A program made the translations under genes and the position numbers. The notes under the pieces were generated by a model that saw nothing but the letters and a program-made list of their open reading frames with translations, was not told where the DNA came from and did not search any database. 64,000 nucleotides of DNA from Macrostomum lignano. Its lineage: Eukaryota. Shown here piece after piece: positions 2,807 to 30,101 of the stretch (positions are counted from its first letter, which is position 1; each line of letters starts with the position of its first letter). The stretch lies in assembly GCA_002269645.1 (NCBI GenBank), contig NIVC01000157.1, forward strand, positions 557,159 through 621,158, read 5' to 3'.

Positions 2807-3366
2807 TTACAGCCGGTCAGGGTACTGCAGGAAAAGAATACGATTTTTAGTTCAGTTATTGTATATGTGTGCACTATATGACCAGCTTATTACAATGTAT
2901 ACAATATATACATGTTCAACTATCATATTTAAACTCCATTGCAGAAACCAATGTATATAATATTATACTCACCGGGTCTAGACCTACGGCCATTCGGCTG
3001 GCCGATTCCAGCCGGGCGCCCCACCGGTCGGCGGCTCGGCGCGCATCAACAACGTCACGCTCGATGGCGCGACGTTGGCCTGGCGTTGACGGGCCGTAGG
3101 CGCCAGCTTCCAGGGCCGCCGCCTCGGCCTCCACAGCCTTGACGGCCGCGGCCGCCAATTGCCACATACGAAAACAATGTCTGTGTAATAGGGTTTCGGT
3201 TCGATACGGATATCGTATTAGTTGATGTTGTTGCTATTTGGCACACCATGTGATAAATGAATAAATAATAATAGATACATTCATATGATGTCACTTACGA
3301 TACGTATGTGGCGACCGGCTGGCCGCGACCGTCAACCTCCAAGACGTCGTTTTGGTTGGCGGACAT
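2807..3366 (-). CDS. 3-exon small orphan protein (97 aa), MW-x21-YG-x23-WxxR family, copy 1
   Basis: Exons 3299-3366, 2973-3180, 2807-2824. Donors GTAAGT and GTGAGT, acceptors acacAG and ttttcctgcAG, phases compatible. Translation MSANQNDVLEVDGRGQPVATYVS-HCFRMWQLAAAA...GLDP-YPDRL*. Confidence 0.75.
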
Positions 3367-3939
3367 GTCTGTAGAAAAAATGCAAGCATTATCACATTAT
3401 GTTATGCACAGTTCGATAAATGATAAATAGCAATAAATATATTGACAACAATAATAAAAGAAATCAACTTACTGTTTGCCTTGAAAGAAATCAATGAGTC
3501 TTGTGTCGACTGAAACTGAAACTGAAATCGAATGGATTTGTTGGGTGATTTTATAAGTCGACTCAACTTAACTGTGTGTACAGTTTACACAAGGCAATCG
3601 TCTATGGCAAAATGTCAATATTTTGTGTTGATCGATCGATGTTTAGTCTATGGTTCTTTGTCGAAAATATTGTTATCGTTCTCTTGTAATACATATTGAT
3701 AGATGGATATAGTTTCAATGTGTACTTTTAGACTGACCATAGCAGCAACAGAATACAGCGTACTGTACACTAAAACAAGCTATATGAATTGCCATAGACT
3801 AAATAGTCTGACACGCACTGTCTATCTAATCTGTGCCAGCGAATGCTTACTGTCAAGAACAAAACGGAACAAAAGCTTGCTTCATATGACTGCAGTCTGA
3901 CTGATGAGATGCGTACCGACCGGAACCTGATGAAGGTGG

Positions 3940-4020
3940 CAAAGTTAGGTGTCTTATAATTGAGTGCTGCATGGGTTCGAATCCCATGTGGTCAGAGTTT
4001 TTTTTCTGTTTAAAGTTTTT
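3940..4020 (+). other. tRNA-like Pol III B-box hairpin followed by an oligo-T run (SINE-like remnant)
   Basis: ATGGG-TTCGAAT-CCCAT T-arm-like stem-loop followed by T runs; repeated at ~29990-30040. No full cloverleaf found. Confidence 0.35.
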
Positions 4021-5576
4021 TTAGAGCAAACAGATTTTCAGTATTTTTTTATTTCTCTTACTCTTATGTTTTTTTATACAATTAAATTAATTACAATTTA
4101 TTATTCTCTTTACACGTTTTTTAAAGAGTACGGGCGAATCTTTTAGTGCGGCACGTATGATTGTTAGTGTAAAAAGTATACTACGATACATGTCGGCAAG
4201 CAAGTATTTGGTGTATATATAAGCGTTTGTCGTCTTTAATTTATTTGATATGTTGTGCCCTTCTTATTGTTCTATCTATATTAATAAAGCTTTTTGGTCA
4301 GAAAAATATGTTTCTATGTTAATTTGTGCTCGATAATACCTAATTTCCTAAGAAATGAGGTTTCTCGTCCTTCTACTTAAGTCGTCATTAAGTTCACCAT
4401 GGCAACAGGTAACAAGTCTGTAAAAATACATTTTCCTGTAAAAAAAACAGTATAGATATCAGGGATAAGAAATAATTAATTTCTATGTTTACTATTCTAT
4501 CTTGACGCTAAAATTCCAACAGAAAAAATTTGTTAATACGGGTGTTACATGTTCCTCAATTCTTTTCGAATTTTTACGATTACATTTGGCTTAAAAGCTA
4601 GAGTTGTTCAATAGATTTTAAATAACAGGTCCGTCCATGGATAATAATTATAATAAGCCGTCGTTAATTGTTTACACTTGTTTTATTTGTGCGCATAATT
4701 GATTGTTAGATAAAGCAAGTGACAATACATTTCACTATTAATCGTAGTTGTCGAATCTAAAGTCAGCAATTAATTAAGACTAAATACAAGTAATTATATT
4801 TCAATTGCATTGTACCTTATGGTTTGTTAGACATTTTGTTCCTAAAAAGCAAAGACCCTAGGATATACCATGCTCGCCAATTTTAGCATCAATTTTACGC
4901 ATCTATTGGCTTCTATTATGGGGGTTGGTTTTCGCTGCTCTGTATTGGCCGATGACAAGGTCATTTGTATACTGTCTAGGGTCATCCCCCGTTTATATTT
5001 AACTCGTTGGTATCGAAATAGAAAGCGTGGGGGTAGCCCGCGAACTGATAAAATGCGCGCCCGCGAGCATCAATCGAAGCCAATTCTGCATTCATTCATT
5101 CAATCTATGGTTAAGCAAAGTTAGTTAGAACTAGCTATATTCTCTTGCTTGTGAGTTTTGATCATTTGCGCATTCGCCCAGTCTGTCCGATTCGTTTGAT
5201 TGTTTCTGGAATCTTGGATTATGATAAACTGTGATTGAACTTGTGAATGAACTGGAATGAATATAGTGCGCCAAGTGATTTATACTTGGTTGATCCATTG
5301 ACGCGTATTGGATTCATTCATCTGTTTATTGAAATATTTAAAATTGGCGCTTTCACATTTTCTTCTTCATTCTATGTCTATTTCAACTTTCAAATCCAAC
5401 GCCTAATTAAATTACTCAGTCTTTTTTTTCCAGTCACAATGAATTCCCTGTACTTTTAAAACACACAACAAACCTCAACTCCGCGGTCGTTTACCCCCTC
5501 TTCCATCGCTCGCCACTCTGCCCCCAAAAGCCCCAACCTCCCCACCCCCCATCCTCTCGCTCGCTTGGCCCCACCA

Positions 5577-6090
5577 CCCAACACTGTACGTTCATTGATC
5601 GATCGAAACCACTAAACTTCCACGCACGCGATCTTTTAGCCTGTCTAATTAGCTAGCAAACCAATTTGATATCAAACGATGAACGCACAACGGTCCGTTG
5701 TACGCACAAGACAACGATGTGCGGTCGGTTATTCGCTGTCTGTCTGTCTGTCCGTCCGTCCGTGTACAAACACGTTGCTCTCTCTTCCAATTCCATACTA
5801 TATAGACGGGCTAGGCTACCACAACGTTGTATTGGCCAACCTTCTCTCTATCTATCTCTCTGACACTCAATGAATTAAATGTGTCAGACAGACACAAAAG
5901 AAGTGAGTGTATTATTAATTAACATTTAGTTAAATTTGAATTCCAGCCACAGCCAACAGATCGAATATTTATTATAAGCGTTACAACTAATCCAACATCT
6001 AATAATCATGGATAATTGGCAACAACTTGACCAATTGAACAAGTGAGTATATGCCTGTTTATAATAACAATTGTAAAGAATCCATACTAC
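5577..6090 (+). repeat. ~0.5-kb inverted repeat, left arm (right arm at 32115-32630)
   Basis: The reverse complement of 32115-32630 aligns colinearly (cccaacactgtac...gatatcaaa...aagtgagta...gaatcca). Confidence 0.9.
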
Positions 6091-27640: not shown

Positions 27641-28129
27641 TTGATTTGTGTGAAAGTGTGAAAGTATGAAAGTACGAAATTAATTCATGTGAAACATAAT
27701 CACACGAGTTTGATTTGCGTGAACATGATTTCAGAGATTTTTAATCAGCAACAATCCAATGAGCAAAGACGACAGTCGGAGATTTTTAACCAGCTACGTC
27801 ACCCATATAGATAGCCGCAGTTGCTGATCCCGGCCAGTTCACACAAGGGATAATAAGTCGGTTAAAAGTCTCTTGTGTTAAAAGGTATGGTAGGAGATTA
27901 TAAACTGATCCAAAAATAGAAGCAGCTGGGTTTCGCACATAGACTATTTGCAGATTCTGAAGGAGACACATCACGCTTTAATACAAAGCTAGCTCATCTT
28001 CTCCACTCTCTTCTCTAATCTTTAATCTCTTCTCTCTTATGTTCTCATTTATATCTTCTCATCGCATCTCTCGTCTCTCCTCTCCTCTCATCACTACTTT
28101 CCTCTCTTACCTGTCTCATCTTTGATCTT

Positions 28130-28305
28130 TCATCTCTCTCTCTCTCTCTCTCTCTCTCTCTCTCTCTCTCTCTCTCTCTCTCTCTCTCTCTTTCTCTCTC
28201 TCTCTCTCTCTCTCTCTCTCTCTCTCTCTTCTCTCTCTCTCTCTCTCTCTCTCTCTCTCTCTCTCTCTCTCTCTCTCTCTCTCTCTCTCTCTCTCTCTCT
28301 CTCAT
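28130..28305. repeat. (CT)n microsatellite
   Basis: Direct reading. Confidence 0.95.
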
Positions 28306-28419
28306 TTCGCTTCTCTCTCCTCTCTCTTCTCTTCTCTACTACATTATTTATATCTTCTCCCTTGTCTTTCGTCTGTATTCTCTCCTGTCTCATTGCTCTC
28401 CTTTTTTCTCGTCTATTCT

Positions 28420-30101
28420 CTCTCCCTCCTCTCTCATCTCTCATCCCTCATCCACTCTTACTTTCTACTCTACTCTCCCATCTATTCTATTTCCTCTGTA
28501 CGATCTTATCCCTTGTCTATTCTCTCACCTATCACCTCTCTTGTCTCTCTCTTTTATCTTTTATCTCCCACAAAACAAAACAATAACAAAATAATCAAGT
28601 TACTCCAAACGCAGGGCGTAGCCAGGATTTTGATTTTGATTTTGATTTTGATTTTGAGTGATGGGATGGAGGGGCCGCGAGTTAGGTGGCGCCAGCTTCT
28701 TATGTGGGGGTGCCAGTTTCTTTTAAGGGAGGGGGTGGGGCACCAGTTTCTTTTAGGGGGAGGGGTGGGGGAGCGCCAGTTTCTTTTTATTTCCTTACAC
28801 CCCCCCTCTGGCTACGCCCTGCTACAGGTCGTATTTCAGTCTATATTACATTACAGCCGGTCAGGGTACTGCAGGAAAAGAAGACGATTTTTTGTTTAGT
28901 TATTGTATATGTGTGCACTATATGACCAGCTTATTACAATGTATACAATATATACGTGTTCAACTATCATATTTAAACTCTATTACAGAATCCAATGTAT
29001 ATAATACTATACTCACTGGATCCAGACCGATGGCCAGTCGGCTGGCCCTGTCCAGCCGGTCACCCCAGCGGCCGGCGGCCCGACGCGCGTCGGCCTTGTC
29101 GCGCTCTATGGCCCGATGTTGGCCGGGTGTCGCCGGGCCGTAGGCGCCAGCCGCTACGGCCGCCGCCTCGGCCTCCACAGCCTTGACGGCCGCGGCCGCC
29201 AGCTGCCACATACGAAAACAATGTCTGTGTAATAGGATTTTGGTTCGGTACGGATATCGTATTAGTTGATGTCGTTGGTGGTGGCACACTATATAATAAA
29301 TAAATAAATAAATAATTAAGACATTCATATAATGCTACTTACGATACGTATGTGACGACCGGCTGACCGCGACCGTCGACTTCCAGTACTGCGTTGTCGG
29401 ACATTTCTGCAGGAAAATGCAAGCATTATCCCATTATGTTGCGCATATTTCGATAAATGATAAATAACAATAAATATATTGACAACAATAATAAAAGAAA
29501 TCGACTTACTGTTTGCCTTGAATCAACCAATTGAAATTGAAATTGAAATTGAAATCGAATGGATTTGTCGGGTGATTTTATAAGTCGACTCAACTTAACT
29601 GTGTGCACAGTTTACACAAGACAATCGTCTATGGCAAAATGTCAATAGTTTGTGTTGATCGATCGATATTTAGTCTATGGTTCTTTGTTGAAAATATTGT
29701 TATCGTTCTCTTGTAATACATATTGATAGATGGATATAGTTTCAGTGTGTACTTTTACACTGAACATAGCAGCAACAGAATACAGCGTACTGTACACTAA
29801 ACAAGCTACATGAATTGCCATAGACTAAATAGTCTGACACACACTATCTAATCTGTGCCAGCGAATGCTTACTGTCAAGAACAAAACGGAACAAAAGCTT
29901 GCTTCAATTGACTGCAGTCTGACTGATGAGATGCGTATCGACCGGAACCTGATGAAGGTGGCAAAGTTAGTTGCCTTATAATTGAGTGCTGCATGGGTTC
30001 GAATCCCATATGGTCTGAGTTTTTTTTTCTGTTTAAAGTTTTTTTTAGAGCAAACAGATTTTCAGTATTTTTTATTTCTCTTACTCTTATGTTTTTTATA
30101 C
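28420..30101 (+). repeat. ~1.7-kb direct repeat, copy 2
   Basis: Colinear with 2380-4080. Confidence 0.9.
28851..29404 (-). CDS. 3-exon small orphan protein (95 aa), MW..YG..W..R family, copy 2
   Basis: Exons 29343-29404, 29017-29224, 28851-28868; all splice sites and the YPDRL* end are conserved with copy 1. Confidence 0.75.

Follow-up and report, generated by a model that had tools for sequence, protein, structure and literature searches.

A small family of spliced genes encoding a predicted alpha-helical hairpin domain in the flatworm Macrostomum lignano

We analyzed a 64,000-nucleotide window of contig NIVC01000157.1 from the flatworm Macrostomum lignano, within which all coordinates are counted, and describe three short, spliced genes on its minus strand (A, B and C) that share a domain beginning with Met-Trp (MW). 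A first-pass annotation, made by a model from the DNA letters alone, had reported four copies of this domain, each starting at an ATG-TGG. The four starts do lie on the minus strand, at 3167, 29211, 23985 and 23606, and spliced models were built by reading that strand at these sites. The four domains are distributed over only three genes with GT-AG introns, with one copy in A, one in B and two (C1 and C2) in C. The gene models and their associated signals are as follows.

3366-2807, minus: coding sequence of gene A, 97 residues in spliced translation
3366-3299, 3180-2973 and 2824-2807, minus: exons 1, 2 (predicted hairpin domain) and 3 of gene A
3298-3181 and 2972-2825, minus: introns 1 (phase 2) and 2 (phase 0) of gene A
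2809-2807, minus: stop codon TAA of gene A
3555-3549, minus: TATAAAA box of gene A, read from the sequence
about 3525-3473, minus: predicted non-coding leader exon of gene A, read from the sequence
3472-3369, minus: predicted leader intron of gene A, GT..AG
2744-2739, minus: AATAAA polyadenylation signal of gene A, 63 nucleotides past the stop codon
29404-28851, minus: coding sequence of gene B, 95 residues, paralog of A
29404-29343, 29224-29017 and 28868-28851, minus: exons 1, 2 and 3 of gene B
29342-29225 and 29016-28869, minus: introns 1 and 2 (the latter phase 0) of gene B
24157-23421, minus: coding sequence of gene C, 179 residues, two predicted hairpin domains
24157-24099, 23998-23717 and 23619-23421, minus: exons 1, 2 (domain C1 and an acidic linker) and 3 (domain C2) of gene C
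24098-23999 and 23716-23620, minus: introns 1 and 2 of gene C, both phase 2

The domain-bearing exons begin at 3180, 29224, 23998 and 23619, and every ATG-TGG stands exactly 13 nucleotides downstream of the end of its acceptor AG, as the first-pass annotation had stated. The intron preceding each domain is in phase 2, with two nucleotides of the split codon supplied by the upstream exon; the earlier claim that introns are conserved holds for this intron in every copy and needs correction for intron 2 of genes A and B, which is in phase 0. All donors and acceptors of the three genes are canonical GT-AG, and their introns are 97-148 nucleotides long. The gene A protein reads MSANQNDVLEVDGRGQPVATYVS/HCFRMWQL...GLDP/YPDRL (97 residues; slashes mark exon junctions), and the YPDRL C-terminus of A and B resembles the YPXnL late-domain motif and is missing from C. 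The upstream elements of gene A (TATA box and leader region) are 94-96% conserved in copy B, and the acceptor of the leader intron could alternatively be a trans-splice site. The genes had been described as missed by the accompanying list of open reading frames (ORFs), which is only partly so: that list holds MW-starting pieces at 2916-3167, 23421-23606 and 23713-24033, and it is only the spliced genes that it misses.

Alignment with MAFFT places the four domains in register without gaps from four residues before the Met-Trp through residue 53, with gaps confined to the C-terminal tails. Residues M1, W2, Y24, G25, V39, A42, W49 and R52 are invariant, a signature that had been recognized earlier in its entirety save for V39. 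Genes A and B are recent paralogs whose domains are 83% identical, and therefore the four domains represent only three independent copies. Among these three, six columns beyond the Met-Trp are invariant, as compared to a mean of 0.58 in composition-preserving shuffles, none of which (0 of 100,000) reached six. Pairwise, C1 matches C2 (BLASTP E=9e-7, 28% identity) and A matches C1 (tblastn E=6e-6); A and C2 yield no significant match when compared alone, so their link is transitive. Overall, identity among the divergent paralogous domains within this one genome is 23-31%. The proposed homology of the first exons also stands, as these exons align ungapped from the donor (VLEVDGRGQPVATYVS and IVEITQDGRNVTSCIS) with four identities and about six conservative pairs. 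A six-frame scan with a hidden Markov model (HMM) of the family found no further copies within the window. A weak match to this model at 56100-56627 (E=0.007) lies antisense to the ORF of a long interspersed nuclear element (LINE), has the wrong spacing and was treated as due to chance.

Exon 2 differs between A and B at 35 of 208 positions, and the distribution of these changes argues for selection on the predicted protein. In the predicted frame the nonsynonymous rate (dN) is 0.096 and the synonymous rate (dS) is 0.45 (Fisher p=2.9e-5 for the synonymous excess), yielding a dN/dS ratio of 0.21; this comparison of the copies at 2807 and 28851 had been suggested by the first-pass annotation, and its outcome is not near 1. 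The predicted frame is also the only stop-free frame of the exon. Four of the other frames contain stops and have ratios (omega) of 1.5-2.1, and the mirror antisense frame, which has an omega of 0.29 as expected of a mirror frame, contains one stop. C1 and C2, at just 28% identity, nevertheless retain every signature residue and the intron position, which therefore indicates long-term constraint. Two M. lignano proteins in UniProt contain the predicted splice junctions. A0A1I8J8R5 (155 residues) is about 95% identical to gene C from the Met-Trp onward, starts at the internal Met-Trp of a C-type copy and contains the junction between exons 2 and 3 (...PAMPAV/LYRNMW...), and A0A1I8J9R4, a chimeric model of 3025 residues, contains MSTNPAQQNDILEVDGRGQPVATYVS/HCFRMWQLAAAAV..., the A-type junction between exons 1 and 2 (TYVS/HCFRMW). 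Both public models are faulty: the first is truncated at an internal methionine and mislabeled, and the second, named 'SET domain-containing protein', swallows an A-type copy. The selection measured in exon 2 and the public junctions support the conclusion, made at the level of sequence, that A, B and C are real, selected, spliced genes, as had been claimed.

Beyond the window, relatives of the family were found only in M. lignano. An exhaustive HMMER search with the four-domain profile, a step also advised by the first-pass annotation, covered 1.84 billion representative proteins and returned three matches, comprising two M. lignano proteins and one repeat artefact, with no described family among them. 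A word-indexed search of 5.8 billion proteins with the alignment as query returned A0A1I8J8R5 only, a single-sequence protein search with Ala-rich stretches masked returned no match, and no family member turned up when JGI metagenome contigs and IMG/VR viral contigs were scanned by pattern plus tblastn. Transcriptomes of other Macrostomum species or flatworms may be missing from the collections searched. Scans of the family proteins against Pfam, PHROGs and NCBIfam produced only sub-threshold noise (DinB_2, PUMA_CC, DarP/YjgA and phrog_1596), and neither the profile nor protein C had a PDB sequence match below E=0.3. These results agree with the earlier statement that the family is unrecognized. 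At least five family loci are known (A, B, C and two differing UniProt copies), all in one species, and the sequence searches support a lineage-restricted family that is described by no curated resource. Such restriction is commonplace, as lineage-restricted small families are common in flatworm genomes.

The same distribution would be seen if the family were an unrecognizable, fast-evolving descendant of a widespread animal protein whose homology escapes detection. The domain is short (~55 residues), has a low-complexity sequence in A and B (21% Ala) and is strongly diverged even among its own paralogs, and homology-detection failure has been reported as frequent among fast-evolving Macrostomum genes (PMC10092323). 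However, no candidate parent family emerged from Pfam, the PDB sequence searches, Foldseek or the HMM search of 1.84 billion proteins, and we regard such a descent as unlikely.

The domain is predicted to be an antiparallel alpha-helical hairpin of ~55-60 residues. AlphaFold2, whose use had likewise been proposed, was run on the four-row alignment and returned two antiparallel helices (residues 2-24 and 33-64) joined by a turn, with a mean predicted local distance difference test (pLDDT) score of 93.9. In all copies, hydrophobic or small residues recur with a periodicity of 3-4 at positions 2, 5, 9, 12, 16, 19 and 23 and at positions 35, 39, 42, 46, 49, 53 and 56, forming the heptad core strings WAVVALA and IVAAWLA, WAAISAR and CVAAWFA, and WTALHAC and GVAEWYE. 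Read from the sequences, this periodicity supports the hairpin fold independently of AlphaFold2. The invariant residues W2, V39, A42 and W49 lie on the hydrophobic stripe, and Y24-G25, followed by a proline in three copies, is located at the turn. On the predicted structure, the signature is the core and turn of a simple hairpin and not a catalytic motif. The family proteins are small (10-20 kDa), near-neutral or acidic (isoelectric point, pI, 5.4-8.0) and without a signal peptide. Each begins with a strand-like segment of ~20 residues (hhEh..G..V.shhS) that occupies its own exon and is followed by one hairpin in A and B or by two in C.

Many antiparallel helical hairpins of this type act by pairing into four-helix bundles, and we propose that the family proteins would most likely be small intracellular adaptor or oligomerizing proteins. 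In this mechanism, W2, V39, A42, W49 and the hydrophobic residue at position 53 would constitute the a/d core of a small-residue (Ala-rich) helix-helix interface, Y24-G25 would form the hairpin turn, and W2, W49 and R52 would converge at the open end of the hairpin. Two molecules of a single-hairpin protein (A or B) would associate into a four-helix bundle, and protein C, with its two hairpins, would build such a bundle from a single polypeptide; the presence of both gene types fits homodimeric and single-chain forms of one bundle. A partner would then meet the Arg-rich second helix and the Trp/Arg cluster as an exposed recognition surface. The modeled fold thus suggests that the proteins probably act through helix-bundle protein-protein contacts.

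The arginines of helix 2 could instead mark the hairpin as a module that binds RNA or DNA rather than as a protein-protein adaptor. Helix 2 of A contains 8 arginines in 28 residues, an R-W-x-x-R-aromatic/hydrophobic pattern is conserved (DRWGARL, SRWRDRF and EIWRRRY), and the DNA-binding C-terminal coiled-coil hairpin of Uup is among the weak fold matches (rank 11, probability 0.35). That match is not significant, however, R52 is the only invariant arginine, and the near-neutral or acidic net charge of the proteins, together with the acidic DEDDDD linker in C, fits poorly with such a role, which makes nucleic-acid binding clearly unlikely in our view.

Genes A and B are carried by two copies of a direct repeat, and gene C and a pseudogene relic lie between them on the same strand. 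The features of this arrangement are listed below.

2176-4081: left copy of the ~1.9-kb direct repeat, carrying gene A
28200-30103: right copy of the ~1.9-kb direct repeat, carrying gene B
15046-15135, minus: pseudogene relic, 80% identical to the end of exon 2 (last ~48 nucleotides, A-type) and the start of intron 2
15214-15255, minus: second partial copy of the relic, inside a 120-nucleotide tandem duplication

The two repeat copies are 87.9% identical over 1947 columns and lie 26.0 kb apart. The relic at 15046-15135, which had been noted earlier as a degenerate fifth fragment near 15055, is interrupted by an in-frame stop and has AT in place of the donor GT. The A/B/C cluster is a local product of DNA-level duplication, and in our preferred reading the family grew by two routes: duplication at the DNA level, which accounts for the A/B pair within the 1.9-kb repeat and the dead relic at 15 kb, and tandem duplication of the domain exon bounded by phase-2 introns, which produced gene C. 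An inverted repeat of 525 nucleotides (91% identity; 5566-6090 and 32115-32640) has one arm 1.5-2 kb beyond the right end of each direct-repeat copy, which argues that the original duplication was larger and was partly inverted later. Near the right end of both repeat copies (3971-4007 and about 29993-30030) a tRNA-like T-arm (CATGGGTTCGAATCCCATG) is followed by oligo-T. No tRNA is predicted there by ARAGORN or Rfam, and on its sequence the element may be a relic of a short interspersed nuclear element (SINE) or of a tRNA. The 1.9-kb repeats were also considered as long terminal repeats, an identification rejected because no gag, pol or reverse transcriptase lies between them.

This setting raises the question of whether a repeated or mobile DNA unit simply carries these genes along, or left them behind, without any organism-level function and with an apparent constraint that stems from recent copying or gene conversion. 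Such an origin is suggested by the location of A and B in direct repeats ending in a T-arm and oligo-T, by the truncated relic, by surroundings rich in satellites, palindromes and retroelements, by adjacent long ORFs that lack relatives and by the mosaic divergence of A and B described below. However, recent copying could not produce a frame-specific dN/dS of 0.21 with 35 substitutions, nor does it sit well with the signature and intron position retained between C1 and C2. No transposase, reverse transcriptase or integrase was found between 2 and 32 kb, and the genes retain an intact structure that includes a TATA box, splice sites and a poly(A) signal. We therefore consider it very unlikely that they are mere passengers.

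The divergence between A and B is unevenly distributed. It amounts to 10-22% per 100-nucleotide bin from exon 2 to exon 1 (2980-3378 as compared to 29024-29416). Across the upstream region, the 3' flank and intron 2 it is mostly 2-8%, and two further 100-nucleotide bins reach 9-12%. A third paralog may have donated the coding block by ectopic conversion, the flanks may have been homogenized, or the 70%-GC exon may have a higher mutation rate. Ectopic conversion has some support because the copy in A0A1I8J9R4 mixes A-type and B-type residues, and it would account for the 5-9-fold greater divergence of synonymous sites relative to the neighboring introns and flanks. A speculative scenario for the family, which we think is improbable, is that the hairpin domain arose within the lineage of Macrostomum, whether de novo out of GC-rich sequence coding for Ala or by divergence beyond recognition, as a self-contained exon module with a conserved phase-2 intron at its start, was spread by exon and gene duplication, and had its coding block exchanged between paralogs by ectopic gene conversion.

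A0A1I8J8R5 bears the UniProt name 'DUF2786 domain-containing protein', and we tested this label directly. DUF2786 (PF10979) is an N-terminal helix-loop-helix domain of ~40 residues that is found in phage and bacterial proteins and is usually followed by DUF7168. The gathering score of PF10979 is 23.9 bits, and in the library used, which holds PF10979.13, phage AXL1 gp74, a true DUF2786 member that served as positive control, scored 33.6 bits. In the same library, hmmscan found no match of A, B, C or A0A1I8J8R5 to PF10979 at E<=1-10. An ad hoc DUF2786 profile made from 8 diverse phage proteins gave these four proteins only -1.9 to +0.5 bits with all filters off (--max), and hhalign of the family alignment against the DUF2786 alignment returned a probability of 0.3% over 4 aligned columns. 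No match to the DUF7168 partner domain was found in the family proteins, which stop 10-15 residues past the hairpin, and the conserved DUF2786 pattern K-x-L-x-L-A-x-S-x-n-x-h-E-A...A-Q-x-L-M is not matched by the family. C1 contains an 'ANHEA' string reminiscent of 'SpnpHEA', the motif in the DUF2786 loop; its HEA is missing from A, B and C2, and the string is located inside predicted helix 2 and not in a loop. With only the database name and this local string in its favor, and with a label that Pfam, the ad hoc profile and hhalign all fail to reproduce, the idea that these are DUF2786 proteins, which would imply an ancient relationship or horizontal transfer, is scarcely credible.

We assign a probability of roughly 0.7 to the reading that A, B and C are three functional nuclear genes of a small family that is so far detectable only in the M. 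lignano lineage. Several points weigh against it. The apparent absence of relatives may reflect a failure to detect the homology of a short, fast-evolving protein, and ab initio prediction may have contributed to the public M. lignano gene models. Between A and B, dS is 0.45 as compared to a divergence of 0.02-0.08 in flanking non-coding DNA, and were these flanks the proper neutral reference, dN would lie above the neutral rate of the region. On the structural side, the high pLDDT may reflect the idealized helicity of an Ala-rich query in a four-row alignment rather than an evolutionary signal, and the two-domain, 155-residue A0A1I8J8R5, when folded alone, is all-helical with four helices at a pLDDT of only 50. 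In addition, Foldseek found no match with E<=0.001 in the PDB or BFVD; it returned only generic hairpin segments, all with E>0.5, so the fold is uninformative on function.

The window as a whole is eukaryotic in character, having GC-rich exons (50-70% GC) embedded in AT-rich DNA (20-35% GC), GT-AG introns of ~100-150 nucleotides and a right half full of GC-rich retroelement ORFs. A 21-nucleotide minisatellite at 5999-7100 (about 50 copies) is open in several frames on both strands and gives rise to spurious 'ORFs' of 300-400 residues. At 8919-9628 there is a nearly perfect palindrome with internal 16-nucleotide repeats, whose arms (8983-9284 and 9312-9613) are 95% complementary and separated by a 27-nucleotide spacer; it is positioned between an exon-like ORF with a P-loop (Walker A; 8492-8923, minus) and a 499-residue ORF at 9634-11133. 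The latter (minus) is one of several long, mostly intron-less, GC-rich ORFs without a Pfam match, along with those at 17030-20274 (plus), 22322-22861 (plus), 24622-25752 (minus) and 26203-26670 (plus), and from its sequence the whole 2-32-kb region looks lineage-specific. A neighboring 623-residue ORF that by eye suggested the C-terminus of a tyrosine recombinase has no relatives in the protein collection and no Pfam or PDB match, and this identification was dropped. Between 38000 and 62000 and at 62856-63347, GC-rich (55-60%) retroelement and Helitron-like ORFs are nested in AT-rich host DNA; they encode gypsy-type protease, reverse transcriptase, RNase H and integrase, LINE reverse transcriptase plus RNase H, and pieces of a Pif1-like helicase, and an RPA OB-fold fragment (REPA_OB_2, 34 bits) is found among them. 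A 274-residue ORF at 56807-57631 (minus) contains two Gly-rich hydrophobic repeats (GGLLPILPIIFGLGAA and GGILPLATLLPIIFAGIG) and has a Pfam match to adenovirus protein X/mu that stays below threshold (21.1 bits against a cut-off of 25). Abutting the 3' end of this ORF is one copy (56606-56811) of a 206-nucleotide direct repeat, the other copy of which lies at 61080-61293.

This work adds a defined, selected, lineage-restricted domain family to a model flatworm, provides exact gene models where automatic annotation erred and corrects a DUF2786 database label. Should the family prove to be Macrostomum-born, its exon-bounded hairpin and unusual mosaic divergence would allow domain birth and gene conversion to be studied on a small scale, and in a flatworm open to experiment the domain would be a tractable example of birth and modular spread; if not, the family is one orphan among many.

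Compared with known systems, the predicted domain has the topology of generic hairpins found in the PACSIN F-BAR domain, AcrA/MexA, the histidine-kinase DHp domain, the ING4 dimerization domain and designed proteins, that is, two antiparallel helices of ~25-30 residues with an a/d core (TM scores of 0.65-0.80, normalized to the query). However, these are fragments of far larger, unrelated proteins with 10-20% identity to the family, and the likeness is a structural analogy only. DUF2786 and the A/B/C family are alike in being short two-helix modules of unknown function, but the latter is without sequence or profile similarity to DUF2786, places its loop differently and is encoded by spliced eukaryotic genes. 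The family also resembles the taxonomically restricted (orphan) gene families of flatworms and other animals, which are likewise short, fast-evolving, locally duplicated, without detectable outgroup homologs and located in repeat-rich DNA. In contrast to many such orphans, the A/B/C family exhibits clear long-term constraint, visible in its invariant core residues at 23-31% identity, its intron phase and its low dN/dS, and its domain is a modular, exon-bounded unit that was copied inside one gene.

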